A stretch of DNA of 64,000 bases from Podarcis erhardii (Eukaryota): NCBI GenBank assembly GCA_964252035.1, contig OZ176202.1; one strand, given 5' to 3'. Both the position numbers and the translations under genes were made by a program. This document shows, in pieces, positions 1,560 through 64,000 of the stretch; within the stretch, counting starts at the first letter, position 1, and every line of letters starts with the position of its first letter. The notes under the pieces are model-generated. The model did no database searches, was not told the origin of the DNA, and was given only the letters and a program-made list of their open reading frames with translations.

Positions 1560-2340
1560 CTAATATTCCCAAGGCCCGGTCCTTAGGTCGCTATGCCGGG
1601 CAAGCCTGCTCTGAGCCGGCTCGGCTCCGGCTCCCCACGGACGGAGACCGTACCCGACTACTGCGGCGCGGGGACGGCGAGCGGCGAGAAGAGCGGCTGC
1701 TGGACGGCGAACGGTACCGGCGGCCTCGCGGGGAAGGCGAGCGTGAGCGGCGCGGGCTCCGGCCCCGCGTCGAACCGGAGGCACCGGAGCGGGAACTGCG
1801 CGAGCCCGAGCTACTGCTCTCTTTGGACCGGCTGGAGGAAGACACGCTACTGGTACGGTACATGGCGCTGCCGGCGGTGGTAGTAGTGGCGGCGGCGGCG
1901 GCGGCTCAAGGAGCCCCGGAGGCCGCCCGCCCTCACTCCTCGCCGAGGCCGCTCCTCCTTGCTCCTCCTGCTGACCATCCTCCCTCAGCACGCTCCATTC
2001 GTGCATGCGCGCGCGCCCCGGACGCAAACGCAAGAGCCTGAGGTTACAAAAAGCTTCCTCGGGCTGCCCCGACAAAATGGCGGATAGGGAAATAGCGGTC
2101 ACGTGCCGCGTACGAGGCCGAGGGAAGAGGCGGGGTTGGGGGGGGGGAGATGCGTCGCGAGACCATCAGCGAGCCCTGCGAATGGCGCACGGACGGACGA
2201 AATGGCGGGGGGCGGGCCCTGAGTCACGTGATAGGGAGGAAGGTAAGCGCAACGGGAGGCGCTCCCCAGTGTAAACTGCAGTGTTATTAGGCTGCCCGCC
2301 TTATTAGGTCCAATCTCCGCCTCCCATGTGTGCGCTAAAT
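1560..2340. promoter_or_regulatory. CpG-island promoter of ZNF318a, possibly bidirectional
   Basis: Very GC/CpG-rich. YY1-type CAAAATGGCGG at 2073-2083, E-boxes GTCACGTG at 2098 and GAGTCACGTGA at 2221, NRF1-like GCATGCGCGC near 2003, and a possible plus-strand donor AG|GTAAGC at 2243. Confidence 0.7.
1654..1863 (-). CDS. ZNF318: ZNF318 (copy a) coding exon 1, Ser/Arg-rich N-terminus; remaining exons lie left of the window
   Basis: GCC-ATG at 1863 gives MYRTSSVSSSSRSKESSSSGSRSSRSG...RSPSPRRSSR (70 codons), then donor CGG|GTACGG at 1653. Resembles the recalled human ZNF318 start (MYRSSARSSVSSHRPK) and its phase-0 end at ..SR|. Lies head-to-head with ABCC10 as in the vertebrate synteny. Confidence 0.8.
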
Positions 2341-4799
2341 CTCCCCCTGCCAACGTCCTCTGAGCTTAATATGTCTGCTGGAAAAAGTTTAGTAAACTAA
2401 GGAGGTTTACCTGTTAGCAACGTGCGGAGGGGAAGCGTCACCTGTTGAATGCATGCCTGTGACGCGCTTCATTCAGGATATGAATTTAGATGCATGGATT
2501 CAATTCTAGTGAATGATTTCTGATCAGTTTTTAACTGTTGTTCATGGTGATGCTGTTCTCGTTGCTGATTTTAGTTTTGTGTTTTCTTGAATTGTTTTAA
2601 TATCGTATGCAAGCTGCTTTGGGGACCATTCACGGGCAGCATAGATGTTTTTGAGTAAATAAACAAAATACTTCTGAATAAACATTCTTAAGAATACCAT
2701 TGGTCACAGAGAAAGTTTGATCATAAAATTTATCCTTATCTTCAGTAATATCGCGAAAACAAGATAAGGTAGAACAAAGTCGAATGTGAAGGGAGTTACC
2801 ATAATTCAAAGGCTAAGGAAGTCATTGGTAAATGACGAATCTCTAGTAGTGTTTAACCACCTGTTTGGAGGTTACTATATATCATTAAAATGCAGTGAAG
2901 ATTTTAGGTAAGTGTCAATTACTTTTTGTGTTGAATTTTCAGTTGAGAGGTCTTCTGGCCTTTTTATCAGGAATTAGAAGACAGTGAGGAATGACAGGCA
3001 AGTTTCACCAGCCAACTGATTTGTTGTCTACTTTGCTGCATCACCTTTAGCCTCTGGGATGGCAGGCAGATAATACCCACCAACTAAGCAAATTTGGCCC
3101 ATGGGCTGCCAGAGCTGTAGCATTTTGCATGCAATCCTGGGAATCTTGAGGTAGAGCTGGGAAGGTGTTCTGTCTGAAATTCTGGAAAGTCATTGCCTGT
3201 CAGTGTTGATAGTACATACTAAGTTAACTGGACCAATGGTCTGAATCAGTATCAGGCAGCTTCCTTTGTCCCTGTCTCTGAACCCTACTTGACATTTTGC
3301 CTTTGGGGATTTTTGAAACAGAAGCCAAGTCAGTTATTATAAAAGAGATCCATATGGATCATCATAGTACTTACAAAGGACCCCCTCAAAACCACCATCA
3401 AATCATAGACTACCTCACACATATGTTCTGTGATTTGGTGGCTTTGTTGTCAATAGATGTAAAAATCATGAGGATTCTTGCCTTGGATCAATATATTTTT
3501 TTGTAGTGCTGCCGAACACTAGAGCTGTGATTTATGTTCTGCTCTATTTCAATAATTTTGTGTACACTCTAACTCTCATGATCCACTGCCCTGGAGGGGT
3601 GGGTGGGATGGTTGGTGGACTCCCTCTGCCCAGCCCAGAAGGTTGTAAAGTCAAACTATGGGAAAGGATCTCAACATTACATAACCAGCAACGCGATTAA
3701 TTCACCCGCTGCCAGCTTCTGCTCGCCCTGCCAACATGCCGAGACACCCTCCCACCCTCTAGAGGACGCTAGAGGGAAAGTAAGTTGGTTGCAGCAGGGG
3801 AACGAAATGCCCATAGACGAAAAAAAGGTATAGAGCAACATACCTGTGGCTTCCTGTTTTTGGAGGGGGCGGGGCTTTCATTTTACAATGAAAACAGCCT
3901 CCTCATTCAGGGAAGCGCAGGTCAAACTGGGCTGGGGTTTGATGGGGGCGATGTAAGTGACCACTCAACTGACATTTGCTTTAACGCGAGGTATGTTTTG
4001 AATGGGTTGTCTTTTTCTGTTCTGCATTCTGTTTTCCATACAATTGTGTGGAGCATTGCAGCTGACATAGAACAGCGGCGCGGGCGAGTTCACATGAAAT
4101 ACCTGTAACGTGTATTGTGATGTCGTTGCTCTCCTATCTCTCTGCTAGGCATCCCTGACGTTGCATTTTGCCAACAGGTGATAAGTTCTCAAAGCTGTCT
4201 ATGAAATACTTCCCGAGTCCGAGGATAACAAACGTTGCATCCAACGTTAGTTACACTCAAACTAGACCCGCTGAAATGAGCAGGCACATTAATTTCAGTG
4301 GGTTTCCTGAAATTACAGCCTTGGATACAGCCTTGGTCTACATAACAGGGTTGCTGTAAGCCACACTCTGCCCGTTTCACCTCTTGCAACAATGAGACAA
4401 TAAGGTACTGTATTGCAAAACTGCTGTAGATCACTCTCGGCCACTCGACCTTGCACTAGGAGGATTTAACAGCAGGCAACCCGCAGTACGAGCACAATAA
4501 ATCTCAGCCTCCCCGCTCCTGCTTAAATTTTAAAACCAGCCTAACACAATACGCACACGTGTTGGTGTCGTTGCAGATCCCACTTGGGTTATTCCTTGCT
4601 TTCGCTTCTACTTTAGTTTGCTCAGTTGGCGAGGGGAGAGACGGGAAAGCACAGCTGTGATACAATCCCGGATTCCCCTATTGTTTCCTATTTAGCAGCT
4701 CTCACTTTCACGTTTCCGAAGTATGAAAAGGCAAATCAAAACACAGTGGCAAAAATAACCAGGAAGCTCAGCGTTGTATTTATTTATTTATTTGCTCAT

Positions 4800-6262: not shown

Positions 6263-26867
<20,605 letters not shown>

Positions 26868-27232
26868 CCTCCCTGCAGAGACACAAACACTGGACAATTG
26901 GTACCTCACGACTGGGAATGTTCCCCTCTGCAATGTGGGACCCTTTCCTGATATCCGCAGCTTAACGAAAGATGCACTCCACACACGGCTGAGAGTCCAG
27001 CTTACAAATTGAGAACAGGTGACAGAACATTCTCTGTCCAGGACTGCCAAGGGCTGCAGTTAATCGCTCCAACACATCTCGGCATCAAGAAAGAACCCTG
27101 TGTGAGACCCTGGAGAGCTTGCTACAAGGCCATGTGGGCAGTGTAAGGCAGCTGAGCATTTAACACCGTGTCCTTCCCCTGTCCTGACTTTATTCAAGAC
27201 GTCCCCACCCTGTCCCAAGTGGCGTGGCCTAC

Positions 27233-27363
27233 CTTGGTCATAGAACCTGCTTGGCCAGCCACTTCGGCAACTGAATTGCCAGGGTTAGCAGCAAGTCCCA
27301 TGGCTACAGTCTGGCATCCTCACACATTGTTTGCAGTATTCCTCTTCCCAGCCTGTGTCACAC
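27233..27363 (-). pseudogene. DLK2: DLK2 pseudo-exon (degenerate duplicate of the exon at 63318-63448)
   Basis: Same 131-nt length with intact AG and GT. Translates CDTGWEEEYCKQCVRMPDCSHGTCC*PWQFSCRSGWPSRFYDQ versus [43 protein letters not shown] (26/43 identical). In-frame TAA at 27287-27285 and two EGF cysteines lost. Flanking intron sequence is also homologous. Confidence 0.9.
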
Positions 27364-35573: not shown

Positions 35574-35941
35574 GGTAAGGTAAAGGACCCCTGGATAGTT
35601 AAGTCCAGTCAAAGGTGACTATGGGGTTGCAGCGCTCATCTCACTTCAAGCCGAGGGAGTCGGCATTTGTTCACAGACAGCTTTCCAGGTCATGTGGCCA
35701 GCATGATTAAACTACTTCTGGCGCAACAGAACACCATGATGGAAGTCAGAGCACATGGAACCACTATTTACCTTCCCGTCGCAGCAGTACCTATTTATCT
35801 ACTAGTACTGGTGTGCTTTCAAACTGCTATGTTGGCAGAAGCTGGGACAGAGCAATGGGAGCTCATCCTGTCAGGCAGATTCAAACCGCTGACCTTCCGA
35901 TCAGCAAGCCCAAAAGAATCAGTGGTTTAGACCACAGCGCC
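35574..35941 (-). mobile_element. Sauria SINE, older diverged copy
   Basis: GGTAAGGTAAAGGACCCCTGG tail and body homologous to the copies at 6510 and 10407. Confidence 0.75.

Positions 35942-36968: not shown

Positions 36969-36970
<2 letters not shown>

Positions 36971-37010
<40 letters not shown>
36971..37010. repeat. (AAT)n microsatellite
   Basis: Direct inspection. Confidence 0.9.
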
Positions 37011-37012
<2 letters not shown>

Positions 37013-37975: not shown

Positions 37976-38248
37976 CTGGATTGAGTTGCAAGTTATCTCC
38001 TCATTTTTTTCCATTTTCTGACTTGTCTTTTTCTGATGAGTCTTTATTTTCAGAAGACAGCTTCCAGGCTTTCTTAAAAATGTTAATCCCCAAGATCAGA
38101 GCTACCTTATCAAGCTCAGATTGCTTTTTATCTGCCGCATCAGAATGCATCTGTAGCTGAGCAACTTCCTTTGCTATCTTCTCTCGTAGTTGGTTCACTT
38201 CCACCAGCAAGGGATCTTTTGCCTTACGCATCTTGCGCATCATCTCCC
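37976..38248 (-). CDS. ZNF318: ZNF318b exon 6 (coiled coil) with in-frame TGA at 38003-38001
   Basis: Acceptor TAG|GG GAG ATG; EMMRKMRKAKDPLLVEVNQLREKIAKEV..SENGKK*; donor CAG|GTAAAA at 37975. Confidence 0.85.
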
Positions 38249-47200: not shown

Positions 47201-50200
47201 CGCTGTACGCCTTTCCGCTGCTCCCCGACCTGCCCTTTGGGGCTGGTGGTGGGCTTCCCCCCGTCAGCCCCAAAGAGCAGGTCGAAAGGAACCTGAAGCC
47301 TGGAGAGCGAGAGGGGTCGGTGCGCACCGACCCCTCTCGCTCTCCAGGCTTTTGAGGTAGCCGCCTGAAGGCGACTGAACGCACCTTAAACGGCACCTTG
47401 TTTTAGAGGGGGAAAACAAGAGGGGGGAAATTCTCCCCCTCTCTGCGCAGCAGCTCCTGCCACTTCGCTGAAGGGGCACTGGGCAGAGAGGGGGAGAATT
47501 TTTTTTCCTTGTTCTCCGCCCTCTAAAACAAGGTGCATCCTATAGTCCGGTGTGTCCTATAGTGCGAAAAATACAGTAATTTGCATTGTTCTTATCACCA
47601 CGACAGAGTTAAAATCACTTTAACAGTACCCTGTTAGCAGAGACACTGAGCAATGTGCCCAGCAATAAAATACTGGCCAAAGTTTATTGAACAAATCAAA
47701 CTCCAGCACAGGGCTGTCTTAAGCATATGCGGCGCAGGGGTGCAAAGATCCGCCCGGCGCCCCTCCCAAAGTTGCCCAGTTGTCAACCTTTTTTAGGGGG
47801 GGAACCCCAAAGTTGCTGACCTTTTTAAGGAAAGGTTCCCCAGAGTTGTCAGGCACCTGGTTGGCGAAAAGAGGCGAAGCTGCTCACTCTCTTTCTCTCT
47901 CTCAGGGAGCTGCCGCCAGCACACTGCGAGTCCCAAAGTCGGACCGAAGTGGAGAAATGCACAGGAAAGGCAAGCGGCGGCAACCCTTTGGCCCACCTGT
48001 TCCTTCCACCACCCAGGGCAGCATGAGGAGGGGCTGCTTGCCTGCTGCTGCTGCTGCTTCCAGCGTCGGAGGAGCGAAGGGACACCGCTAAAGCCGAGGC
48101 GGGAAAGGCATGCTGAGGAGAATGCTGCTTGCCGCCTTTTCTGTCGCTGCTGTTGCCGTCGTCTCTTGTCCTCCTCCTCCTCCTCGCTGGGTGCGTGTCT
48201 GTCTGCTTGCCCACCCACCTACCTGCTTGCTTGCTCTCTGGCTCCCGGAAGAGCCCACTGCAGTGCTCCGACCAACAGACAGGCTCTTCCCGGACTCAAC
48301 TCTCGAGCTCTGGACTCTCAGCCTGGCGCCCCTGAGAGCCTGGCACCCGGGTGCCCTGCACCCCTAGCGCCTATGGGTAAGACAGCCCTGCCCAGCTGAA
48401 AGAAAGAAGTTTTGCCTTTCGACAGGCCTTGTTGACAGCAGTCTTAGATTCAATGAAACAGCCACAAGAAAATTCACTCACAGCTAGACAGCTTACCAAA
48501 GCAGCTACTACCTCAGTAAAGATCATGCCACCCGCCCTGGTCACAACTTACCCCCTCTTGTCTAGATGACTTACAGACAACATAATTAACCCTTAAATTA
48601 CACACTGAATTATCTCTGCTGTTATACTTCCATATTCTACATACTAACAGCAAATTAATACTGGATCTTCTGTAGCCAAAATGACCACCCAAACATTAAG
48701 AGGTGGCTATATTTTGGCCCAGGGAAATCCCAAGATTTGCAGATGCACAAAAAATATTTTCAAAAACTCTAAGGAGAGACATAAGGAAATAACCAGCCCA
48801 AGGAAAACTGAATAAGCTCTGTCAACATGGAATATTGGGTGAGTGTTGGGGGCAAAAGCACAGGACACTGATGGGGGAGTGAAGAGGAATGGAATGGAAT
48901 AACTGAGAGAACCCTGATCAGCAGCACTCTATGTGGCAACATTTTCTTGTGGGTCCAATTTGGGTTTTCCTTATTCTAGTGTTGATATAGCTTTAACACT
49001 TTCACACTGAACAATGAAACTTCCCGGTTGCTTCTACTTCTAGAAGTGGCTCTAGAAGTAAAAGCAACTAGGAAGTTTCATTGTTCAGTGTGAAAGTGTT
49101 TTACAACTTCTGTCATTCACGCAATTATCTTTCCTAAATATACCCTTTTTCATGTACATGTCTGTGTATATAACCCTATTCTAAATAGAAACCTGCTGTT
49201 GGGGATCTGAAGAAGAAATTTCACCCCTAAAAATGGATTAGGAAAACAGGATGTTTGGGCAGTGAAAGCAAATTATAATATAGATCTTCACACAGTTTCT
49301 GTACCTGCAGGAACATGTGAGTTTAAAATAGCAGCTAAATTGTCATGAGGTAACAAGAAATTTACTAAAAGGGTGTTTCATCATTTTGTTTTTCAACTGG
49401 GGTTCATTTTTAGAAAAGAAGCTGTTTCAGTTCCACATCTACTCTCACGGGTTACTCAGAATCCACTGAAGACAAAACTGTCAGAAAAATTCAAAGAAGT
49501 AGATGTAAAAACTAATGATTTCAATCAAACAAAAGGTTTTCAAAACTGAGCTATGTACTTTTTATCCATCTCAATCCTGCTCTTATTTATAAAAAGACTG
49601 TATGAAATTAAACGGAGACATGTTTTCAATACCTCTCTTTAATTCCTAATATTTTAAATCCATACCAAGGGAGGTATTAAAAATATGTCAATAAGAGAGC
49701 TAAATATGTCTGTCCTATATGTGAGATTCCCAACATGTCCTATACATTTCCCACAACGTCTTACAATCAGGTTGTGGGGTTTTATATTACCCATGGGACA
49801 AGTACCAAGAAAGATAACCAAGGTTAATTATGAGAGACTGGCCTTCAGAGAAGCCTTACCTGTTCCCATCACTCAAACTTGGAGAGCGTTTGTCTGGAGA
49901 GTGAGAGCGCTTGCCCGGAGAGTGAGAGCGCTTGCCCGGAGAGTGAGAGCGCTTGCCCGGAGAGTGAGAGCGCTTGCCCGGAGAGTGAGAGCGCTTGCCC
50001 GGAGAGTGAGAGCGCTTGCCCGGAGAGTGAGAGCGCTTGCCCGGAGAGTGAGAGCGCTTGCCTGGAGAGCGTCTCTACAATTAAAATAACAAGACATCAG
50101 AATTCTTACGGCCAAGTAAGTTACTATGGGGCAGGGGGTTCATGATGCTATTTAAGAAATAAGCCAATATTAATGCAGTATGCAAATTTTACTACAATTG

Positions 50201-52496
50201 ATGTGGATTTGAAAAACACTACATGCATCTAATGTTTATGTGCAGTGAAGACATCTGATAATATGTACACCAACAATGTAATGAGACAATGCAGCTAAAT
50301 TGACAATTGTACCATTTAGAAGAATAAGAAGCCTCCCAATTTATTGTCAGTGACACAAACCACCAAAAAACCACTGTCCACCCCCATTTTTCACAGAAAA
50401 GCGGTCAATTCTAGGAATGGGTTGTTTCTTAAAATTAATTAGTAATGGAACAGGGGGATAGCCCATCAGTCGTATAGGGCACTTCCAAGTTCTAATAGAC
50501 ATTTTTAGATAGGTGAACTTATCTCTTGGAAGCATTTATCTCCTCACTCTGCTTCCTCCTGCTATCTAGATAATCAAATATCAGTTTATTAAGCCAAGAT
50601 ATGTGCAGAGTCACAAATCCACATGCAGCTTGCTCAGCTCCCTGTTCCCAAAGCCAGGCATCAAAACTAACAGCAGTGTACTGTTACATCCAAACACTGG
50701 CTTCCAAACAAGACAGGAACTGGAAGCAAATTTTATTTCAATGGCTTCATTTTCTAGCCTCCTTGGGAGCCATTGACTAGCTTTCCAATTATTTGTTAAC
50801 AGAATAACTATGGTTAACTGGTTTCCTGGCATATTTCCCACTTGAACAAAGGGGGCAGGGGACCAAAGAGATTGCATGCGGGTTCAGTAAATTGATGCAT
50901 ATCTCAGCTCATTAATCATCCAAATGCAGCCTCTTTTCTTCTTCATCTCTCCCCCAGCCTTTAAGATCTTTAAGTATTTGGTTATTGACAAATATGAAAA
51001 GTGAAGCACAATCACTTCCAAAGGCTAATCTTCTCTGAAATTCACAGTTTGATCCTAACCATGACTATCCATTAGCTGTGTTGATTTTGGTTGAAATAAT
51101 TTTCAAGTAATCCAACCAGGTTTTAGGCGCCCAATATGCCTTAGCAGCCATCCTACTTTTCAAATTCATTCAACGATCCACGAACCTTTGGTAAAAATAA
51201 ACCTAAGCTCCTCCCCACCACAAGCCAAGTCTACAGGTATTGCCTTAACCTGTTAAGCGTATTTTGTGTGCGGGCAAAAATCACCGGCCACTTTCCTTCA
51301 TGTAGAAATGAAGGAAAGAAAGGAGCGTGCAGCTCAACCTGAGACGGGCCTACTCAGAAGTCTTACTAAATCCAAGGTGATTTCCTCTCAGATGTAGGAT
51401 ACACAGGGCTGTTGCACATTTAATGTTTCTCTACTTTGAGGCAAAGCTTCCCCTCCAGCTGTCATTAAGCCTTTCGACCTCCTTCGCATCACCACAGAGC
51501 CAAGGATGGGATCGCAGGTAAGATTGCTTAGGGATGCTCAAGGCTGCTGGGCGCATGCCCAGAAATGTGGGCCATGATATTATATATAACTAAGTTGGGG
51601 GCAGGAAAACGGCTGGCTATTCCAGTAAGTGGCAGTTAGGTGCAAGAGATGGGGGATGCTCCTTGGGGAAGGTACAGTGGTACCTCGGGTTAAGTACTTA
51701 ATTCGTTCCGGAGGTCCGTACTTAACCTGAAACTGTACTTAACCTGAAGCACCACTTTAGGTTGGGGCCTCCTGGTGCCGCTGCACCACCACAGCACGAT
51801 TTCTGTTCTCATCCTGAAGCAAAGTTCTTAACCTGAAGCACTATTTCTGGGTTAGCGGAGTCTGTAACCTGAAGTGTATGTAACCTGAAGCGTATGTAAC
51901 CCGAGGTACCACTGTACTGAGGCAAGCGGGCGGGCGTTACCCCTGGACGCTGGGGAGGCGGAAGAAGAAGAGTTTGGATTTGATATCCCGCTTTATCATT
52001 ACCCTAAGGTGTCTCAAAGCGGCTAACATTCTCCTTCCCCTTCCTCCCCCACAACAAACACTCTGTGAGGTGAGTGGGGCTGAGAGACTTCAGAAAAGTG
52101 TGACTGGCCCAAGGTCACCCAGCAGCTGCATGTGGAAGTGCGGAGACCCGAACCAGGTTCCCCAGATTAGGAGTCTACCGCTCTTAACCACTACACCACA
52201 CTGGCTCTCGGAGGCGGCTTAAATTCGCTCAGGCCGGGCCAATTCCCCAACCCGTAACCCCCTCAGCCTCCGCCGCCACGGGCAGAGCGTACCCGACTAC
52301 TGCGGCGCGAAGGCGGCGACCGGCGCGAAGAGCGTCCGCTGGAGGGCGAGCGGTGCCGGCGGCGGCTCCGCGGAGACCGGGAGCGCGAGCGCGAGCGGTG
52401 CGAGCTGCGGCCTCGAGCCGAACTGGAGCTGGATCCGCTGGCTTTGGACCGGCTGGAAGACGGCTTGCTCGAACGGCTGCTGCTGGCGCGGTGCAT
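38001..52496 (-). CDS. ZNF318: ZNF318-like paralogue (copy b), six exons, 909 aa as written, no zinc-finger exons
   Basis: Exons 52496-52293, 50074-49860, 45210-44658, 41282-39873, 38634-38535 and 38248-38001(TGA). All are GT-AG, phases 0/2/0/0/1, total 2730 nt. ZNF318 motifs: RDDLAD, DEDYR, MPKKSILKK, FLLPHERASQDGNGFSHILSM, EEKFLYGD, IYDLLKTIGLDIGVAEIGKLAARTQERLHGKK, EEREKLK..EARQKK, KDPLLVEV, KKQSELDKVALILGINIF. Confidence 0.85.
38535..38634 (-). CDS. ZNF318: ZNF318b exon 5
   Basis: 100 nt, TAG|GTATTG...GAAG|GTAC; VLEEREKLKAEQEARQKKLHYLTVELNRLTKQE(G), compared with recalled human VIEEREKLKNDREARQKKMYYLRTELERLHKQQG. Not in the ORF track. Confidence 0.9.
38870..39145 (-). repeat. Interspersed repeat, inverted copy of 34630-34990
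   Basis: See 34630-34990; accounts for the spurious ORF 38898-39146. Confidence 0.7.
39490..39715. mobile_element. Tc1/mariner-type MITE
   Basis: TA-CAGTGGTACCT ... AGGTACCACTG-TA; same family as 51675 and 59511. Confidence 0.85.
39873..41282 (-). CDS. ZNF318: ZNF318b exon 4 (1410 nt)
   Basis: TTTAG|CCT GAA GTC...AAA CGA AAG|GTGAGA; open for 470 codons and contains HERASQDG and LLKTIGLDIGVAEI. Confidence 0.93.
41521..42610 (-). mobile_element. CR1 LINE 3' fragment, interrupted by a MITE
   Basis: CTGCTGGATCCAGCCAGTGGCCCACCTAG..CCTGTTCTCATAGTGGCCAAC resembles the reverse complement of a CR1 3' end. The sequence GGAGAAG-TA-CTTCCTTTTGTCTGTCTTGAATCT is split at the TA by the MITE. Confidence 0.6.
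41860..42461. mobile_element. Tc1/mariner-type MITE with GC-rich internal tandem repeats
   Basis: TA-CCGTATTTTTCGCCCCATAGGACGCAC ... GTGCGTCCTATAGGGCGAAAAATACGG-TA. Confidence 0.88.
44658..45210 (-). CDS. ZNF318: ZNF318b exon 3 (553 nt)
   Basis: TTATTAG|G GAT GAC TTG...GTG CAG|GTTTGG; (R)DDLADGPIF..DEDYRFRDDFLHQSDYS..YRPNEITAMPKKSILKK..PSVQ. Confidence 0.92.
45585..45665. mobile_element. Short Penelope-like retroelement terminus
   Basis: CTGAAGAAGTGTGCATGCACACGAAAGCTCATACC..TTAGTTGGTCTTTAAGGTGCTACTGG resembles squamate Penelope ends (from recall). Confidence 0.4.
46839..47576. mobile_element. Tc1/mariner-type MITE with ~110-bp internal repeats and a perfect palindrome
   Basis: TA-CCGTATTTTTCGC ... 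GCGAAAAATACAG-TA; opposite orientation to the copy at 41860. Confidence 0.85.
47709..48390. mobile_element. hAT-type non-autonomous DNA transposon
   Basis: 13-bp TIRs CAGGGCTGTCTTA / TAAGACAGCCCTG; no exact 8-bp TSD. Confidence 0.7.
48995..49100. repeat. Long inverted repeat (50-bp arms, 6-nt loop)
   Basis: AACACTTTCACACTGAACAATGAAACTTCCCGGTTGCTTCTACTTCTAGA-agtggc-TCTAGAAGTAAAAGCAACTAGGAAGTTTCATTGTTCAGTGTGAAAGTGTT, 3 mismatches. Confidence 0.9.
49860..50074 (-). CDS. ZNF318: ZNF318b exon 2, built from a 21-bp coding minisatellite
   Basis: TTTTAATTGTAG|AGA CGC TCT CCA GGC ... GGG AAC AG|GTAAGG, 215 nt, phase 0 in and phase 2 out as exons 1 and 3 require; RRSPG-(KRSHSPG)7-KRSHSPD-KRSPSLSDGN(R). 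Confidence 0.85.
49896..50063. repeat. 21-bp minisatellite, 8 units (GGAGAGTGAGAGCGCTTGCCC)
   Basis: Seven identical units plus one ending CCT; counted from the sequence and consistent with the ESESACP repeats in the ORF track. Confidence 0.95.
51675..51914. mobile_element. Tc1/mariner-type MITE
   Basis: TA-CAGTGGTACCTCGGGTTA ... TAACCCGAGGTACCACTG-TA. Confidence 0.88.
51960..52209 (-). mobile_element. Squam3-type tRNA-derived SINE
   Basis: Minus strand reads GAGAGCCAGTGTGGTGTAGTGGTTAAGAGCGGTAGACTC (A/B-box head) ... GATATCAAATCCAAACTC(TTC)n tail, with a GGAGGCGG TSD. Confidence 0.8.
52293..52496 (-). CDS. ZNF318: ZNF318b coding exon 1
   Basis: MHRASSSRSSKPSS...RSPSSGRSSRRSPPSRRSSR (68 codons). 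Shares CCGACTACTGCGGCGCG and CTTTGGACCGGCTGGA with 1654-1863 and has the same CGG|GTACG donor. Confidence 0.85.
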
Positions 52497-52499
52497 CAC

Positions 52500-52820
52500 G
52501 ACAACAGCAGCGCCTCCGCCGCCGCCAAGGCCGCTCTCGCTAGCTCCCTGCCCAGCCCCCAGCCCGCTCTGCGCACGCATCAACTGCCCCCGCTCCTCGC
52601 GCGCGCACGTAGCACCGGACGCAAACGCAGCTCGCGCGGGGCTGGGTGGGCGGGCCGGGAAGACGCTTCCTTCCGACGTCCTTACAAAATGGCGGCGGCG
52701 GAACTCGAGTCACGTGGCCTTTGAGCCTGCCCGGGGATGTAAGGCATCCTCCCAGACGCTAGAGGCCGCTGGGGGGGAGCAAAAATATATCAGGGGGCTC
52801 CGTCCGGCCTGGTAACTCAG
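52500..52820. promoter_or_regulatory. CpG-island promoter of ZNF318b
   Basis: CCGGACGCAAACGCA 52615-52629, YY1-type CAAAATGGCGG 52685-52695 and E-box GAGTCACGTG 52707-52716, the same motifs in the same order as at 2018-2105. Confidence 0.75.
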
Positions 52821-55800
52821 AATTCATAGAGAGAGAAAACGTGTAGAGTTTTCGAGTTTCCCGTTCTCCTTTTGATGTGTTCTGTATTCAGCAGTGGTCT
52901 GCGAGAATTTCAGCTGATTCAGAACACGGGCTTCCTCTGGATCTCGTGTCATTTGATCACTGATCTGTATATAGGCGGATTTCTGAGGAAAGGCCCAAGA
53001 AAGCAGGGGGCTTGCAATGTTTAGTTGGCTGACCAAAAAAGGCTTTCCCCCAATTAATCAGTCCTCAGATGTAAGATAATAAAAATCGTAATGAAAACTA
53101 AATTGATGTAAATAATCAAACGGAAAGTATCATTTTAAAATGACAATAAGGGGGGGTGTGACTCTTCTAATCCGATTATAGGAAGGTGCCTTATTGCGGC
53201 TCAGAATATTTGTCCATTTAGTTTACCGTTGTCTACTCTGACAGGCAGCACCTCCCAGGGTCTTGGACAGAGATATTTCACGTTGCCTGCTAGATTTCTG
53301 CTTGAGATCCTAGAAAGATGCCCCACCAGCTCTGACTCATTGTCATTGTACATTGATTAAAACCAAAGGAGATAGCTTTTTGTTCCTCTTGTTCTTATTC
53401 ATATGCTGATTTAAGATTTGACTGATTAAAATTCATATTATTAACCAACTGCTGTTTTAAACCTTTTCATTGTGCTGTTCTAATGGTCTTATTTTTATTA
53501 CATATTTTAATTGTGAATGTTTATCTTAGTGCCTTAATTAACTTGTTTTATTATATATTTTAATTATGTATCATTGGTTTTATACTTATAAACCAGTAAG
53601 AGGCCATCTTGGAAATGAAGTAGTATATAACTTAATAATAATATTTATATAATCAGATTCATAAAATAGTATTCACCAAACAATGTTGGAAGCCTAATTC
53701 CTTAATGTGTTTGTGTTTATTTCAGACATGATTTCCAAGCTGAATCGGAGTCTTTGATTTTGTATCTGGCAGAAATTTTGTAGTTGCAATTTTTGTAAAC
53801 CTGCTCTTGTTCTAAACTGTCAGGATGATGTCAATCATGCTCGCTTTCAAAACTGAATATGCATATCTGTTTTGTTCGCTGTGCATTTGACTAGGTGCTC
53901 CTTACATAATTACACACTCTGAGATTATTCAATTCATTGTCCCAAACTTTCATCAAGGTGTCATCGGTCCGGTTCATAATGTGAAAAGATTGTTTGAGTT
54001 GTGCATACTTTTGTGAGCTTCTCTGAGAGCAAGAGTAAACAAGAGAGGTAGGTACTAAATAAGAAATATAGTACACATTAGAAAGTTGCTAAGGGGCAGA
54101 AACTAATATGGAGCAGGGTCCATAGCTTGGTGGTAAGCACATGCTAGCAACCACTACTGCTCAAAGTAGATTAGCCTTTTCCAACCTGTCCTCCAGAGGT
54201 TTTGAACCTTAATTCCCATCAACCATAGTCAGCATGCACTGGCTGGGGCTGATGCAATTGTAGTCCGAAACCTCTTGAAGTCATTAGCTGGGGAAGTCTG
54301 GAGTAGACATTACTGGGTTCCATGGACAAATGCTGGACTAGATGGTTCAGCAGCTTCCTATGTTCCTGTACAGTTTTAAACCCTATTTAACTGAATTTTG
54401 TCTGCAAGTAGTGCAGAAGCTCCTACTGTATAGAGAAGTAGGATGAGATAAGTGCAGTTTAATTGTTGCAATTGTTGGCTCAGGAGTTACCCACCTTGAG
54501 CCGTTCTGATACGGATAAACAGAAAGGAATTTAAAACATTATGGTACTCTTTTGGTTTGAGTCTACCATTGCCATATTAAACTTGAAATACGTTGAACGG
54601 TTGAACCTATTCTCTGGACCATCTGTCCAGAAGGAATGCAAAGTGCAATTGAGGACATGAATTACAGTACCCGCTTATGCAGGGTGGTACCCCTGATCTA
54701 TTAACTTAAGCTGCAGTGCTGTGCAGTTTGATAGATGGGATTCAAGCTGACTGGCTGTACACAGGAATGCACCCTTAAAGAGTACATTTTCCTGGAATAA
54801 CTAACTTTATAGAAGCCAAATATTAATATGAATTAACATAACTATGAAGACATTTAGACCTATACAAAGTCAGAACAAAACACATCAGAAGCAGGGCTTG
54901 CAGTGACATGCAAGTACAAGATTTATGCCTCTGACAAAAGGATAGCTACTCCAGTGAAATGATGCTTGGAAGTAGTAATGCAGGAAGTTGGCTGACAACT
55001 CTTCTGCTGCATTCAAGCACACCTTGGCAATATGTTCAAGTGCTTTTTTGGCAGATTCTCCCTCTGTTGATTCTTTGTAACTCGTTGGAAGGAAATGGAA
55101 CCCAAGCATGAAAGTACGGAACCCAAGTATGAAAGACACCAATATTATAAACAGTGTAGTAGAGAAGTTTGAAATGGCCCTAGTTCAGTGGTAGAGCACA
55201 TGTGTTGCATGCAAAAGGTTTCAGATTCAATTTGTGCTTTTTCACATGCAGAAAGAAAGAACTAAAAGTGCACCACTCAACTAGCTGAGCACCAATGCAG
55301 CTTGCATGTACAAAGTTTCAACACATATGCAACATATTCTTAAGGGATAAAGCATGGATATATTGTGGAAAACAACAAGTTAATTTTACATATGCGAAAC
55401 ACTGGGAGAATTCACACTTGCGATAGGAAACATCATAGATAAGAAATACTTGGCCTTTCAGATGTTGTTGGACTCCAGCTCCCATTAGCACTAGCCAGCT
55501 TGGTTAATGGTCAGGAATAATGGGAACTGTAGTCCAACAACATTGGAGGGTCACACATTCCCTGTACTGGTTTTACATTGTTGTGTGTCTGTGTGTATGC
55601 ACGCACACTTGTGATGTCCACTCTGGATCCTATCTTCACTGCAATCTGCAGTGTAAATAGGCAGAGAGGCAGGAATCAGTAGGGGATGGAATTGTGTACA
55701 AACTGAAACCAATGAAGGTGCACTAGATCCGCTTGCAAAATCACCATCAGGAAGTACCCTTCAATGGAATGTTGGAAGTAATGTTTGGAATTCCACAATG

Positions 55801-58800
55801 TTTTTAAAGAGCAAGTAAGAGATTGTGTGTACGTAACCTGACATGTTCAGCAGTGGGTGTTGCAGCATAATCAGGGAAGTTGCTGTGCAGCTGGAATCTG
55901 GAAAGAGCTTGGCAGAAGTAGATTCATGCCACGCCTCATGTTGAAAAAGGTGGGACCTGTGAAGAGGGGTTTTCCTTTCTGGGTTGAAAATAGTATGTGT
56001 ATGGAGAATGGTGGTGTTTGCATAAAGAAATAAAGAAATTAATATTTTCCTGTAACAAGATTATGATGCTTTTAAAAACATTACAATTTTGCCTTTCCCC
56101 CTTAAGAATCATCACTCTTCTGTCACCACTGCCTACTATTCCATGAACCCAGGACTCCTCTTTCCCCCCACCTTCCAAATGGATTTCTGGAAACATTGGA
56201 TATCCATTTTGTCTGCAAGCTGTGCATCTCATCAGTTAATTTGCACAAAATATGCACTCTACAGGTAAAAATGGCTAGGAACATAGGAAGACCTTTGATG
56301 CATCAGGCCAAAAGCCTATCAAGTCCAGCACCTTGTTCTCACAGATACATACAGGAAGCCCACCAGCAAGACCGGCATGCAACAGCTCTTCTTGCTTTGT
56401 GTGTTACTTATTCTCTGACACTAGCAAACAATGAAGCCCTACAGCAAACTGGCATATTCAAAGGATGCTTTGCTTGTTTGCTTCGTTGCACCCTCCCCTC
56501 TGCTCTGCCCCATCTACCGTCAGCTGTTTTTCTTCCCTTCTTCAGTCTCACTTTCTTTTCTGCCACTTCCTATGCTTGGAACAATCTCCCTTTGTTTGCT
56601 CCTTAACTCTGTACATTTTCCCTCAAATCCCAATTTCAGAAAGACTTGTTCTCAGCCTCCATAGGAAAGCCACTTTTTACATGCTTTCAGAGCAAAAGTA
56701 AGGACATTGGTACTGGGTGCAGATTGTAGCACCTTTGCTCAGGACCTCAGCTAGCGGCGAGGATAGTGCTAAGTTGCTTTTTCGTAAAACCTGCAAGGAT
56801 GAGCTTGAAAGCACGGAGGCAATAACTGGTGAAGTCTCAAAAAACCTGGGGAAGGGAGGGCAGGATTCCTAGGATGGATGACACTGCCTGATACAGCTTC
56901 TTTGCCTGTCCCACATCTAGCAGAAGGAAAATAAAGCATGCAAAAAGGTGGAGGCAATTTTGCAGGGTATGGACAGGTTACAGAAACCAGCTTTCTCTTG
57001 ACGCAGTTTCAACTTCACCGTGTTACTTGATGCAATTCTCACTTGCGGCACTTCCAGGCTGTTGGTATTTCCAGGTGGGATTCAACCACATACTGGCAAA
57101 TTCAGGTTGCACAGCTAGAGTTGACGTGGAGGTCTTGCACAACTATTTCCCCTAAAGGCTGGACTTTTTGCGATACGGAAAGTAACAGGGGAATAGACTA
57201 GAAAATGTGAGACAACACCTGCTTTGATGCCGTGTCTTCTGACCTCTTTACAAACAAATCAGAAGGAATACTCAATAAGCCGGTTGCCTGGGAGTGCTTT
57301 TGGTCATTCCCAAGCTTTTACTTTTCCCAGTGTGTGCAGTGGGGTCCCTGTCTCCAGCATCTTAGCGCCACCCACTCAGAATGAAAGGGGGGCTTTTAAG
57401 CATTTAGGAATGCTGAAAACACAAGAACACAAGGTGTTTCATTTTTAAGAGAATGGCGTGCAAGTTTGGTTATGTACAATGGAACTTCATGGCAAACATG
57501 ACTCTAAATCATTTGCCCATATATGTGCAGAGAAAAAACCCCCCAGAAGATCTAGGTGTATAGATTGTTGCAATATGTCCCTAATTATTACAATTCTATA
57601 ATTATAAAATTGTGTAATCTTAGGTTATATAATCTGAGAAGGGGCGTGGCTGTGACTATCATGAAGGGACCCCACCTTTCTGAATTTGCTGCTCATGAGT
57701 AGGCGGCTTGGTCCGCAGGGCCTGAATAGCTGCTCTCCCCTCTGAATGAACCAAGCCCAGGCAGCACCAGGCAGCTGTTCATTCCGTACTATTTGTAACT
57801 GGGATCTTTCCTCGCTGCTCTCTTTGCCATCTACACTGAGACATGAAAGCTGTGTTGCATTTGAGCAGTTAGGGGAGGAGGGGTACACAGTTTCGCATTC
57901 TGCATTTAAGTCATGCTTCATACTGGATAGTTTTGGGTAGGTCACTCTATTTCCCTGCTTAACCTACAGGACATGATGGAGATACAGTTGATTACAAATA
58001 ATATTTCTAAAGCAAGTTGTACATGAAAAAGTGTAGTGGAAATTACTCTCCCAGATGCATATGGTTTTTAGTACTCTTCTCTTCTTGGTTGGACCACCTC
58101 CTCCCTCCAGACCTTTTAGAGCAGTTCAAAATGGCAGTACTTTCTTGAAATCTGGACATAAGAGATTTTCAAGCACTTGTTACCCCTCTGTAGGGATTTT
58201 GGAATTCTTTTGCAAGGGAGGTCATCCTCTTTCTCTTAGGGCTGACAGTGAGCCAAAGACGATAGCAATTCTGGCAGGTCAGGACCTGTGGTTAGAGGGT
58301 AACCATTGTGGTTTGGAGATGGGCCCAGTGGTACGTGATGGGACAAGGCATGGAATGACATCATCCAAGAGAGGGGAAGTCTATGGAGGGGAGCAGGAAG
58401 GTGCGGGTTCATATACTCCATTTCCTGAATTTATTTTATAAAGTTACAACCATTCATCAACTGTGTATTACAAAAATAATATTTATGGTGAAATCTCCCC
58501 CTTTTTTTGCTTTACTCAAGTTGCATTTCCAGACATGTAACCTATAGCTCCTTGACCATGAAACTAGGGTGTTCATGTATTCTTATTTTGGGGTCAGAGG
58601 TGAAAGAACAATGGAAGTCAATGAGGAAAACCTGCATGGTGTACCTAAGCCACAGCCTCAGGGACGACCCTGACAGAGAGACCACTGTCTCTGACATACC
58701 TGAAGTGGAACTGGCCCTATTGAATGGGGTGCACTTTGCCACTGAAGGTAAGGGAACTGTTTACCATACCTCCGTCTGACTCAGTTGTGTTACTTATTAA

Positions 58801-59510
58801 AACAGGAGATTTGAAGGCTGAGCTGAAAACAGGGGTGGGAATAAAAGTTCAATAATCATTTTTATGCCTCTGAAAGAGCACCTGCCATTTTGGGGGGATT
58901 TTAAAAACAAACAAACTAGGGAGTGTTCCACCAAAAGGGAGCAGAAACGTTTAAGGCAGCAGGAGGAACAGGTCCCTGTTGCCTTGGGAACCAGACTGGT
59001 ATCTGTCGTGACTACGAAGTGGCATTACCCCCAGTCTGAAGCCCAACCCTGGGTCGAAATGTTATTCTGCTTACTGATCCCACCTGTGACCTCTGTTTGT
59101 TGGTATTCTGCGCAAGGGACTGCGTGCATACAGTTCGATGCAAATAGACTCTGAATGTGCAGTTTGTACCTTCCATTTCTGTAGGGCACAGATTGTGTGT
59201 TGTGATCCTATAAATGCTGGATCTGTATGTACGCAGGTTCTCTGCAGAAGTTAGGAAGGCGGAAGTCAGAGGCGGGAGTTGGAGGCAGGCCAACAGAGCA
59301 CCCCAAGCACCCCTCTCCAGATGAGCATCTCTACCTACACAAACATAAGGGGGCATCGAGATGAGAGCAACAGTGTGCATAGACACCACCTGCATTTTGA
59401 CGTGCACCAAGCACATGCACCCAAGTATAGACAGTGTCTATACAGACTATCTTGTCCTCCAGCAAATGGGTCTTTGAATGAGTTTTCCAACCCTTTTCCA
59501 AATGTGTGTA

Positions 59511-59734
59511 CAGTGGTACCTCAGGTTACATACGCTTCAGGTTACACACTCCGCTAACCAGAAATAGTGCTTCAGGTTAAGAACTTTGCTTCAGGATAAT
59601 AACAGAAATCAGGCTCTGGCGGCGCAGCAGCAGCAGGAGGCCCATTAGCTAAAGTGGTGCTTCAGGTTAAGAACAGTTTCAGGCTAAGAACGGACCTCCG
59701 GAACGAATTAAGTACTTAACCCGAGGTACCACTG
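59511..59734. mobile_element. Tc1/mariner-type MITE, inverted relative to 51675
   Basis: TA-CAGTGGTACCTC ... GAGGTACCACTG-TA. Confidence 0.88.
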
Positions 59735-61003
59735 TACTGCCTTCATTGTTGTCACTATGTAGCCAAATATGAATTGTTTTATGAGATCACCCACCGCCTT
59801 TACTTCCACTTAGGGAAGGAGAATAACAGAACCTTTGCATGCCAAAGATCTCAGGCTCCATCCTCACCAACTTCAGGAAGGGCTGAAAAAGATCCCCAAT
59901 TTGAAACCCTGAAGAGCTGTTGCCAGTCAGTGCAGACACTACCAGGCTTGATGGACCAATGTTTTGGGATACATCCTTGGAAGTATACTTTTTTGCCTTA
60001 AGGCATCAGTATGGTTCAACATGTGCTACTGAAAAGTGCTATCATGGTTGCTTCTGGTTCACTCCCAAGTTTGATCTCTCACAGACATCAGGCCTTGGAA
60101 TCAGGATTGCTAGGCCTCATATTTCCAGCTTCGTACACAGCCATTTCTTTTCCGGCAAGTGAAGAGTCTCAGGCCAACAATCTGAGACTGAGAAGGGGCA
60201 GTTGGCTTGCTGCTTGCTTTTGACCCTTCCTGACACCAGAGCTGAGAAAATGAGGGAGTACGATGTGTGAAATCAGGGTCTGAATAAACCTTCAGGGAGG
60301 AGGGGAAGAGAAGGGTTTTGTTTCAGAGGTTCCATACATTTGCAGCCAGATCAAGACCGGACATAGTACAGGGCACAGTGGGCAAGACAATGATCTAGAA
60401 TGGTCAATGTAGGCAGCAAAGTGGCTCATGGCACCACAAGGTCCTTAGGAAAACAGACTGAAAGGCCTCTAGGCAGAATGGGGATCCCATATCACCTGTG
60501 CTAGAGGGTGGTGGGGCATACACAGAGCAGTTCCTGGGCCCCCTTGAGTAAACAGACAGGCCATAGGATACCTCCAATGACTCTGACCAAGAGTTACCAG
60601 ATGCTTAAGGGCTTAGCCAAATACTACAACCTGTCCTGGCATGCTTAGCCTCATTCTAGCAACTCCCTTGGAGCGCTTGTGGGATGACATCCACCTATCT
60701 TGCTTGCTGTTTCCAGCCCTGGCTTTATCGTGACCCAGCACTTCCTTGGCTGCCCTTAAGACGTTGCTGCCACCAAGCCCGTGGCTTTAAGCTGCATGCA
60801 TTCAAGGACTCCGCTTTCAAGCAAAGGCTCTGCTGCCTCGTGGACATCCTCTTCCCTGGCAATGCACGGCCTTGAGTTCGATCAGAGCCCGCGGTGCTTT
60901 GGAGGCGGACGGCCAGAGCATCCCCCTGGACGCTGCTCGGAGAATTCCTTGACTCATCTGGTGGGTGTACAGAGGTCAGCCAGGCTCCGACTCAGGGGGG
61001 TCC

Positions 61004-63448
61004 TTACAGCTCAGTCGTTTTCCTGGGTTCTATCAAGACCGTACTCAACATGCCCACTTGGCACTCTTGGTCCTGGAGTTTCCTTGCAGACTGCGAGGGG
61101 CTTTGGCACCTCCGGCGCCCCCTCTGCCAGTTCTTCAGCAGCACCAACACAGTTACCAAGACTAGGAGGGCCGTGAGCAGCCCAAACACCAGCACTAAAA
61201 TCAGCTGCGACTGACTCAGCCCCGAGTCCTGCTGAGTCACCACCTCTTTCACGGAGATCAAGAGCCCTCCCCCGTTTGATTTCTCACTATAGGTAGTGAC
61301 CCGCTTCCCAGTCACCACAACCCGGACGGGCTCAGACTGGGTTGTCCAAGGGTTGCTGCTGGTCGTGCTTCTCACGACGTCGTTGCCGTGCCCCTTGGGA
61401 TCAGCGTGAAACGCGGTGACCCACGTCGGCTCGGGAGCAAGGAGCTCACAGGTCTTGCCGACAAAGCCCTCGGGACACAGGCAATCGAAATCGTTGACGC
61501 GGTCGTAGCACTTTGCCCCGTTTCTGCACGGCTGGCTGGCGCAGTCGTCAACATTGATGCTGCAGAAACGCCCTTCAAAGCCAGTAGGGCATTGGCAGGA
61601 GAAGCGGTTGATGCCGTCAAGGCAGGTGGCACCGTTGGCACAGGGACGCATCAGGCAATCGTCGACGTCAATCTCGCAGTGGGTGCCAATGAATCCTGCC
61701 AGGCACTTGCAGGTGTAGTTGTTAGCAAAGCCATTCTGGTCCAGGCACTCTCCGCCATTCTTGCAAGGGGACCTGAAAGGAGAGAATGGGGACCAATCAC
61801 AACATCCATATGGGCCGTCCTACATTTTATTCATCTGTTTAAATACCCCTTAACCATTAGCATTTCTAATAGCAGTCATTATTATTATTTTATTATTTGT
61901 ACCCCACCCATCTGACTGGGTTGCCCCAGCCACTCTGAGTGGCTTCTAAGTGCACGTAAAAGGTGCATGCAAAAATAAGCCACACAGGAAAAAATAACAA
62001 CAAAAGTCGTCATAAAACTGAACGCTGCCTTGAAATCCTTGTTCGTGAAATGGTGCGTTTTAAAGCCTTTTACGGCTGATCCTATACGCGTTCACTCAGA
62101 AGTAAGCCCTACTGAGCTTAATGGGACTTATTCCTAGGCAAAGGACTGGAGCCTTTAAAAGGTTTTGCTCCTTGCGCCTGCCTTTCCTCCCATCTATTTC
62201 TGCTAGGATCTCTCACCCTGCCTTATCACATGGCCCCGTCTTCAGCTCACAGTTCTTTCCATGGAATCCTTCAAGGCACAGGCAGGAATATTCCCCATCT
62301 CGGTCGTAGACGCACTGGGCTCCATTCTGGCACGGGGTCTGGTGCTCACAGACATGCACGTCTGAAAGAGATGGGGGGGGGGAGAGGAGGACGAGGAGAA
62401 AATGCAGGTCAAAAGTACTCAGGGCTGGTTTTTCATGCCAGACACCCACACCCACACATAAAAGTTCTCTCTTTTTTAAAATTTACTGTGATAATGGAGG
62501 CTGTACAAAGAAAAGGTGGCCAGCTAGCACAGCATCCTCCTTCGCAGTGTCCAACCAGATGTCCCCTGCTCTTCAGAGGCACAAGGCCACTGATTCTGAA
62601 GGTGGAAGTGGGCTCCTGTATCGGAGCAGAAGCTGCCGCCTTACTTCCTCCTAGCCCAGCACTGTGTACAGTTGTACCTTGGATCCCAAATGCCTTGGTA
62701 CTCAGACACCTTGGCTCCCAAACGCCGCAAACCCGGAAGTGAGTGTTCTGGTTTGTGAACATTCTTTGGAACCCAAACGTCCAATGGGGCTTCCGATTGG
62801 CTGCAGGAGCTTCCTGCAGCCAATCAAAAGCCGTGCTTTGGTTTCCAAACGAAAGGACTTCCAGAACGGATTCCGTTCGACTTCCAAGGTATTCTGACTA
62901 GCAGTGGTTCTCCAAGGCCTTAGGACAACTTCATGTAGCTGGGAAGTATTGGAGTCAATAGCAAAAGTGGTTGTTTTCTCCAGGGAGGCCTCAAAGCAGA
63001 AAATGGGAAGACGGCCGAATTACTGCTGCTAATAAGTCTGTGCGGTTCTTCTGTTAAGGCTGAATTGCTGTTGTTCGGAAATGGCTTCATTAATCAGTAG
63101 TGAACGTGTTGTGCCTGGAGAGGACCCGAGTTTCAGCCTTTCAAGGCAGCAGCAGCAGAAGCTATTGTCTGAAACTCTGGAGAGCAGGTACCAGCCCATG
63201 TGTTCTGGCTTGGTATAAGGCAGCTTCCCAATAAGCTTCTACTGCAGTGCCCTCCTTTCCCTGTCGTCCCCACTCTCCTCAATAAGTCCCCACCCTGTTC
63301 CAAGTGGAGCGACGCACCTTTCTTGCACAGCTTGCCAGCCCAGCCACTTTGGCAGATGCATTGCCAGGGTTGGTGGCACGTTCCATGCTTGCAGCCTGGC
63401 ATCCTCACACACTGTTCACAGTATTCCCCTTCCCAGCCTTTGTCACAC
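61004..63448 (-). CDS. DLK2: DLK2 (protein delta homolog 2 / EGFL9), last three coding exons; 5' exons beyond the window
   Basis: Exons 63448-63318 (131 nt), 62361-62217 (145 nt) and 61772-61004 (769 nt, stop), with compatible phases. EGF repeats ([18 protein letters not shown]; [21 protein letters not shown]), LLISVKEVV, a TM helix ([23 protein letters not shown]) and the tail [15 protein letters not shown]. Confidence 0.95.
62669..62896. mobile_element. Tc1/mariner-type MITE related to 24188-24414
   Basis: TA-CAGTTGTACCTTGG start, shared GGCTCCCAAACGCCGCAAACCCGGAAGT core, degenerate right TIR. Confidence 0.7.
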
Positions 63449-64000
63449 CTGCAGAAGGAAAACCAGAAAGTCAGAGCAGGAGAACACCACCGCAGGCACC
63501 AAGCAAAGGCACTAACAAAGCCATGTGCAGTAAACATCGCAAGGCATTAGACTGGTGTTTCATAGTCATGGGACTCAGCTGCATTAGTCAAAAAACAACG
63601 TTTTGAATGCGTTATAACATGCAACACCAGATGGTGCCAGAGAGCAAAAGAAAAATTCTATGTGATTTTTATACAGTGGGGTTTTTTGTGTGTGGTTGTA
63701 ATAATGATTTAATTTCTGACTTATTTATAGCAGTTCCCCCCGTGTGTAGATCCACCAATGGTCTCTGGTCCTGGTGATGGGTGGAGTCAGGATCCAGGAT
63801 CCTTTTCAGTCTCAATAGTATGATAGGAACAAGTACCTCACACAAGAATGTGAGGAGAATTCTTGAAGGAAGCAGCAGCAGGGGGATGGAGCCAAGGGTG
63901 AGGCAAAATGGAGGCACTTTGGGCAGGAGGCAAGAGGAGGGGTGGGGCTTATGAGTACCACAAGTTTTGGTGAAGAGCGTCAACCAGCCAAGATTGCCGC

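Follow-up and report, generated by a model that had tools for sequence, protein, structure and literature searches.

A 64,000-nucleotide stretch of contig OZ176202.1 from the lizard Podarcis erhardii (assembly GCA_964252035.1), hereafter the window, holds two genes of the ZNF318 family. The one at its left end, ZNF318a, is the long, parental gene; the other, ZNF318b, is a truncated paralogue that stands between an ABCC10-type transporter gene and DLK2, next to the dead remains of a DLK2 exon. An original prediction had read this layout as a tandem duplication of a ZNF318-ABCC10-DLK2 block with reciprocal gene loss. We observed that the finding is real and had been accurately described, that its mechanism is partly established, and that the event is older and more widespread than had been assumed. 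The reading that we prefer, at about even chances, is one old head-to-tail segmental duplication followed by gene conversion; the duplication would then predate the lacertoid/toxicoferan split and probably go back to the squamate stem.

A truncated ZNF318 copy made from DNA

Contrary to the claim that ZNF318 had survived twice, ZNF318b is a truncated paralogue and not a second full ZNF318: it consists of exons 1 to 6 and is without both zinc fingers and the large last exon. By strong full-length homology it belongs to the ZNF318 protein family, with the U1/matrin-type C2H2 fingers and the long C-terminal exon missing, and what remains is the Arg/Ser-rich N-terminus, the central region and the coiled coil. 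Its end is a structural truncation, not the product of a one-nucleotide slip: the homology between the long and short genes passes the ancestral exon-6 splice donor and fades about 45 bp into intron 6, and the stop codon of ZNF318b (38004-38006) lies about 10 codons short of the ancestral end of exon 6. Exons 7 onward of ZNF318 encode both zinc fingers and a last exon of 1570 codons, and no counterpart of them was found, either in the window or in the 10-kb flanks downstream of the short copies of P. muralis, Rhineura, Sceloporus and Eublepharis. In addition, a zinc-finger motif was found in none of the squamate short proteins examined.

The five introns of ZNF318b stand at parental positions, which rules out a processed retrocopy. 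When compared with the long gene of P. muralis, the homology covers exon 1, exon 3 with its flanks, exon 4, and exons 5 and 6 with the whole intron between them (P. muralis L002 22059-22802 against window 38686-37970, 74%); in Rhineura, the long and short genes are homologous through most introns. The Podarcis pair has 78% nucleotide identity over exons 4 and 6 and is uniformly 69-81% identical throughout. Since introns are shared, both by the two ZNF318 genes and by DLK2 and its relic, the copy was made from DNA, in agreement with what had been claimed. Within the window, ZNF318a is represented by exon 1 alone, the remainder of the gene lying to the left; positions 1-4184 show 93.5% identity to P. 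muralis L002 12007-7843, which holds the first exon of the annotated 2670-aa ZNF318, and in the alignment of exon 1 the ATG and the splice donor are conserved. The 5' ends of the two copies also match each other, 1588-2032 with 52225-52629 (64% over 461 bp, E 1.5e-31), around a core that reaches 79% (1635-1780 and 52276-52428). Another candidate pair upstream of both copies, 3172-3302 and 54263-54403 (68%), was too weak and gapped to be kept as evidence.

Exons 1 and 3-6 of ZNF318b share 93-97% protein identity with the annotated P. muralis ZNF318-like protein (904 aa, tblastn), and exon 2 shares 80%. Exon 2 is a 21-bp minisatellite, and its low match perhaps comes from differing repeat copies; it also matches residues 75-158 of the long protein of Anolis sagrei, which has a like repeat. 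The large exon is 58% identical to the same Anolis protein. A precomputed Pfam match, PF27978 ZNF318_helical, is listed for both short and long proteins; a local Pfam scan of the long and short proteins returned no family, perhaps because the library copy used is without the PF27978 model. The NCBI annotation already lists the short gene as "zinc finger protein 318-like", and we found no paper on ZNF318 in squamates or lizards or on its duplication.

The DLK2 relic lies just beyond the transporter gene. Its positions 27099-27404 match 63166-63489 of the intact gene (72%, E 1e-49), and 27511-27676 match 63808-63960 (63%, E 2e-10), so that the intron stretch which had been quoted as common to both (27541-27670 and 63837-63950) is truly shared. 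The match reaches 27764 when the P. muralis sequence beyond the end of the window is used. In a global alignment of relic and DLK2, the exon part is 77% identical, the upstream intron 65% and the downstream intron 67%. The exon itself is dead, with an in-frame stop at 27285-27287 and one cysteine gone, as seen in its translation, RCDTGWEEEYCKQCVRMPDCSHGTCC*PWQFSCRSGW; its splice acceptor and donor are still recognisable. We searched 27.8-38 kb with the P. muralis DLK2 locus and 10 kb upstream of it, and found there no further DLK2 exon or upstream sequence. As for the intact DLK2, it shows 99% identity to the P. muralis protein delta homolog 2 and matches to Pfam EGF and EGF_DL_JAG; its 5' exons fall past the end of the window.

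The gene order and strands that had been claimed, ZNF318a(-), ABCC10(+), dead DLK2 exon(-), ZNF318b(-), 8.5 kb, intact DLK2(-), are correct. The window has 96-98% nucleotide identity to two stretches of P. muralis chromosome OZ076956.1, and the P. muralis assembly is collinear with it from 29.2 to 64 kb, with the same layout. Furthermore, the span 25987-29990, which comprises the end of ABCC10, the DLK2 relic and the sequence beyond, is bridged by a contig of short-read run X1 (3998 nt, 4 differences) and by one of run X7, which bears the label of another organism (4040 nt, 58 differences); the relic was seen in the window and in these two contigs. An uncollapsed haplotig or a mis-join therefore has a negligible probability, since independent contigs from two runs under two organism labels cross the ABCC10/relic junction and a chromosome assembly of another Podarcis is laid out identically. 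The copies are indeed, as had been argued, too diverged for a haplotig, with nucleotide identities of 63-81%. The features of the window are collected in Table 1.

Table 1. Features of the 64-kb window, in order of position
Feature	Positions	Strand	Remarks
Block common to both ZNF318 5' ends	1588..2032	-	exon 1, about 170 bp upstream and about 10 bp of intron
ZNF318a (long, parental), exon 1 coding part	~1597..1863	-	aligns to first exon of annotated P. muralis long ZNF318
ABCC10-type ABC transporter	6263..26867	+	about 21 exons, from first coding exon to stop 26865-26867; exon-like open frames
Probable ABCC10 3' untranslated region	26868..27620	+	RNA reads of run X23; antisense across DLK2 relic
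DLK2 relic	27099..27764	-	one EGF exon and part of each flanking intron; equals about 0.9 kb of DLK2
Dead DLK2 EGF exon	27233..27363	-	translation and nucleotide alignment to live exon
Spacer of unassigned origin, DLK2 relic to ZNF318b 3' end	27765..37930	.	about 10 kb; repeats only matched
Short-copy-specific conserved element, 3' untranslated region	37695..37794	-	once per short-copy locus
ZNF318b exon 6 (last)	38004..38249	-	tblastn with P. muralis P0137
ZNF318b exon 5	38533..38634	-	match to P. muralis ZNF318-like
ZNF318b exon 4 (large, 471 codons)	39870..41282	-	75% nucleotide identity to ZNF318a exon 4
ZNF318b exon 3	44658..45212	-	homology to ZNF318a reaches 110-150 bp into each flanking intron
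ZNF318b exon 2	49841..50074	-	21-bp repeat, Arg/Ser-rich heptads; matches P0137 (P. muralis ZNF318-like) residues 60-141
ZNF318b exon 1 (coding part)	52284..52496	-	match to P. muralis ZNF318-like
Gap, ZNF318b 5' end to DLK2 3' end	52630..61003	.	about 8.5 kb, repeats only
Intact DLK2, 3' part	61004..64000	-	last exon 61004-61771, exon 62216-62362, EGF exon ~63319-63453

The short copy in squamates

The event is not specific to this lizard; it is old and shared among squamates, and the short copy has its place relative to the long gene also in an iguanian, a gecko and an amphisbaenian. Annotated "ZNF318-like" proteins, 700-1100 aa long, occur in geckos, the amphisbaenian, lacertids, iguanians, anguimorphs and snakes, each beside a long ZNF318. 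According to the record coordinates, the long and short genes are arranged identically, in order as in orientation, in four taxa, with distances from long gene to short copy of 48 kb in P. muralis, 66 kb in Rhineura (amphisbaenian), 67 kb in Sceloporus (iguanian) and 38 kb in Eublepharis (gecko). In Sceloporus, an annotated ABC transporter of 1560 aa lies upstream of the long gene and faces the short copy. At each short-copy locus examined, exons 1-6 are followed by the exon-6 donor and the first 40 bp or so of intron 6. The bird Pogoniulus has DLK2 tail to tail with the transporter gene; the 2.5 kb that separate them hold nothing that resembles ZNF318, and we take this arrangement as the ancestral state.

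Downstream of its stop codon the short copy has conserved sequence of its own. An element of its 3' untranslated region (37695-37794) is conserved at 98% in P. muralis, 83% in Rhineura and 80% in Sceloporus, where it lies within the spliced terminal exon, and it was found in none of the long-gene and DLK2 loci that we compared. More broadly, window 31862-37975 and Rhineura L003 23900-32800 share eleven collinear non-coding blocks with 65-88% identity. The identity in these blocks peaks in the first 500 bp after the stop codon of ZNF318b. The blocks point to a conserved 3' untranslated region and perhaps to regulatory sequence.

Several ZNF318-like genes occur in Erythrolamprus (P0009, P0158, P0160), Eublepharis (P0008, P0126), Gekko kuhli (P0006, P0012, P0127) and Paroedura (P0013, P0017). 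The additional recent copies of Erythrolamprus group with the long gene of that species, and duplication at the locus has therefore continued. Elgaria P0003 (residues 1290-1405) and the C-terminus of Eublepharis P0126 have in common a "DGVHLS" motif that is unrelated to ZNF318, and Elgaria P0003 gives a weak match to GDSL-like lipases, under the curated cut-off; these C-termini look like exons captured from a mobile element or annotation fusions.

Single or repeated origin, tandem or not

According to the preferred reading, the duplicated unit would have extended from just inside ZNF318 intron 6, across the 5' half of ZNF318 and ABCC10, into an intron of DLK2, and the junction would have left a DLK2 relic and a ZNF318 copy cut after exon 6 between the retained ABCC10 and the intact DLK2. 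The observed series, with the 3' end of ABCC10, the DLK2 relic(-), the 3'-truncated ZNF318 copy(-) and the intact DLK2(-), fits the junction predicted for a head-to-tail tandem. Later, deletions would have removed the second, redundant ABCC10 and the 3' exons of the relic, and about 10 kb would have been inserted at the junction. The truncated copy would have become a separate gene with its own promoter and its own 3' end, and its exons 1-6 would have been overwritten at intervals by conversion from the long gene, which may be why its coding sequence looks younger than its position. The duplication at the DNA level, the truncation point, the shared position, the selection described below and one clear conversion tract are established; we infer that ABCC10 lay within the duplicated unit, that the origin was single and that conversion ran from the long to the short gene.

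The conversion tract is that of Eublepharis, where the long and short genes agree at 95.8% over 380 bp in and around exon 1 (L005 10022-10395 and L008 10046-10425), and at 66-77% elsewhere; this is a clear, recent gene-conversion tract. In the Podarcis lineage, in which the two copies have a uniform identity of 69-81%, conversion is presumed rather than seen, and in this respect the locus differs from a case of concerted evolution of linked paralogues. It resembles such a case in that position and structure indicate one origin and the coding sequence groups by lineage, and in the gecko tract, which stands out from a background of about 70%. Indeed, a directly visible tract was found together with a conflict between, on the one side, the gene tree and its topology test and, on the other, the shared position, exon content and 3' element.

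Several results weigh against the preferred reading, some against the single origin and others against the tandem mechanism. In a maximum-likelihood tree of 53 proteins, gecko short copies group with gecko long genes (support 98) and lacertoid short copies with lacertoid long genes (support 99), and the toxicoferan short copies form one clade beside iguanian long genes. Trees of exon 3 and of exon 4 repeat this grouping by lineage; the short exon 5-6 segment is poorly resolved. The approximately unbiased (AU) test rejects a single clade of short copies (p 5.5e-6, log-likelihood difference 116), a group which was named after the tree had been seen, though it is the obvious prior hypothesis. The synonymous divergence (dS) between long and short genes is 0.41 in Podarcis, 0.28 in Rhineura and 0.52 in Sceloporus; for the long gene, Podarcis and Rhineura differ by 0.36 and Podarcis and Sceloporus by 0.56, a value above both lacertoid long/short values. 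In addition, no short copy turned up for two skinks and one cordylid, which would need a loss. At the DLK2 locus of the skink Lerista, no ZNF318-like or ABCC10 sequence was found within 10 kb downstream, a flank too short to decide. The tree and dS results could be obtained with recurrent, independent duplications in geckos, lacertoids and toxicoferans, the copy of Podarcis and Rhineura then coming from the lacertoid stem: the long/short groupings, the rejection of one short-copy clade and the lineage-specific dS, below the lacertoid-iguanian divergence in lacertoids, would follow directly, and the locus does re-duplicate, as seen from the recent copies of Erythrolamprus and the several genes of geckos. 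The introns of the DLK2 relic have diverged by K 0.43-0.47, a figure that is biased low since alignable parts alone were counted; it is close to the long/short dS of Podarcis, exceeds the Podarcis-Rhineura value and stays below that of Podarcis and Sceloporus, and it does not settle whether the origin was single or repeated. However, repeated events would have had to give, each time, the same position and orientation relative to the long gene in the four lineages examined and the same exon 1-6 content with the exon-6 donor kept, and the 3' element of the short copy is common to lacertoids and an iguanian. Because of this shared position, exon content and copy-specific 3' element, and because a conversion tract is directly seen in a gecko, we favour one old duplication with conversion and regard recurrent duplication as improbable.

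The tandem mechanism is opposed by what the locus has kept of ABCC10. A search of the 52.6-61 kb gap with the whole ABCC10 region (tblastx, E up to 1) returned repeats only and no ABCC10 relic, and a lenient tblastx of the 10-kb flanks upstream of the short copies of Rhineura, Sceloporus and Eublepharis had the same outcome. A position of ABCC10 between the long and short genes was seen in Podarcis and Sceloporus only. Moreover, 10 kb that match neither parent locus lie between the relic and the short copy's 3' end; apart from repeats, spacer 27765-37930 has no homology to the ZNF318a gene or the DLK2 locus, and it is conserved in part between Podarcis and Rhineura. The junction itself is thus not visible, because these 10 kb separate its two sides. 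The locus is like a tandem segmental duplication with loss in that a DNA copy with introns lies in the same orientation beside its source, with a truncated gene and a relic at the junction, and unlike one in that the middle gene, ABCC10, has no second copy or relic and the junction is broken by 10 kb of unassigned sequence; not every gene of the block is therefore present twice or as a relic. The proposed reciprocal loss is accordingly a supposition, since a loss of ABCC10 from the second copy would have left no trace. These observations could also be explained by a complex, non-tandem duplication, for example by replication template switching, in which two pieces, the promoter-to-exon-6 part of ZNF318 and a DLK2 segment of about 0.9 kb, were inserted into the short spacer between ABCC10 and DLK2, so that ABCC10 would never have been duplicated and no reciprocal loss would have occurred. 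Such an insertion accords with the lack of an ABCC10 relic in four lineages, with a single EGF exon that is without the DLK2 neighbours expected in a tandem product, and with the shortness of the homologous stretch before the ZNF318 ATG (some 170 bp in Podarcis, some 7 bp in Rhineura), and it does not need a deletion of 25 kb. Nevertheless, it does not predict the order and orientation of a simple tandem junction, which are those observed, and neutral ABCC10 relics could have been lost in a time that well exceeds 100 million years. Neither model accounts for the 10 kb that separate the relic from the copy. We consider the insertion somewhat unlikely and rank the tandem model above it, although not by much.

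Selection, possible function and neighbouring sequences

We compared the short copy of the window with that of Rhineura over exons 4 and 6 and obtained a non-synonymous divergence (dN) of 0.185, a dS of 0.283 and a dN/dS of 0.65, with a bootstrap interval of 0.49-0.89; a ratio of 1 was attained in none of the 300 replicates. Between Podarcis and Rhineura, the long gene has a dN/dS of 0.18 (0.13-0.24). The frame of about 900 codons is open in every lineage sampled and has been kept since the Podarcis/Rhineura split. These values indicate that the short copy is under relaxed but real purifying selection, and the suggestion of selection for the second ZNF318 was borne out by the ratio and by the open frame together.

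ZNF318, called Zfp318 or TZF in mouse, affects the splicing of immunoglobulins M and D (IgM/IgD). For mouse Zfp318, a pair of alternative transcripts that influence transcription driven by the androgen receptor in opposite ways has been reported, as has the infertility of null males (PMC11520953). These long and short isoforms are a precedent, at the level of isoforms, for a short form that stands alone. The squamate copy derives from ZNF318 exons 1-6 and shares with ZNF318 the Arg/Ser-rich N-terminus, the central region and the coiled coil. It differs in several respects: in predicted mammalian short isoforms (about 1130 aa) the first zinc finger is still present and the protein ends behind it, whereas the squamate copy is without any finger; the copy is a gene apart, with a promoter and a 3' end of its own; and its non-synonymous evolution is about three times faster than that of the long gene. 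By analogy with the mouse isoforms, it is a reasonable hypothesis that a finger-less short form may act with or against the long protein. A wider proposal, which we find rather doubtful, is that all squamates, or all but scincoids, carry a finger-less ZNF318 paralogue about 200 million years old, which would be a hard-wired short form or decoy, acting for instance by coiled-coil pairing with the long protein and kept compatible with the long gene throughout by recurrent conversion.

Squamates appear to have kept the N-terminal half of ZNF318 as a separate gene for well over 100 million years, and this makes them a natural experiment on that half. The locus is also a compact case of conflict between gene tree and synteny, and calls for caution when duplications are dated from coding sequence. 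It is otherwise an ordinary old segmental duplication, with gene models already present in the public annotation.

The transporter gene of the window gives a Pfam ABC_membrane match, and its closest solved relatives are MRP1, ABCC2 and ABCC3, the TMD0 region included. Its last five exons share 72-90% protein identity with the ABC transporter that is tail to tail with DLK2 in the bird. We take it to be ABCC10, because of this match and because it is head to head with ZNF318. In RNA run X23 (organism E), the depth of first mates on the minus strand is 0.3-5.6 over 26652-27621 and zero past 27621; this depth is low, and the organism label of the run differs from that of the best-matching DNA run. 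Since this coverage is in the sense of ABCC10 and ends there, the DLK2 relic probably sits antisense inside the 3' untranslated region of ABCC10.

Two other stretches, 24184-24408 and 62665-62891, had the appearance of a third relic of the duplication and were rejected as such: the former is inside an ABCC10 intron, the sequence is internally palindromic, and its ends match the heads of local short interspersed elements (SINEs). They are two copies, 73% identical, of a palindromic element of about 220 bp, the latter lying in a DLK2 intron; the SINEs whose heads its ends resemble are at 39488-39717, 51672-51916 and 59518-59737, and the element thus mimics a duplication relic. In Rhineura, about 1.7 kb upstream of the long and short genes are 98% identical (L006 926-3557 and L003 3252-4937), as would result either from two insertions of a young repeat or from conversion or duplication in recent times. 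Finally, the distance from the short copy to the long ZNF318 is about 12 kb greater in P. muralis than in the window, and the P. muralis L002 sequence past the point equivalent to window 4184 does not align; it would seem that the two Podarcis differ by a large insertion or deletion in the 5' region of ABCC10.

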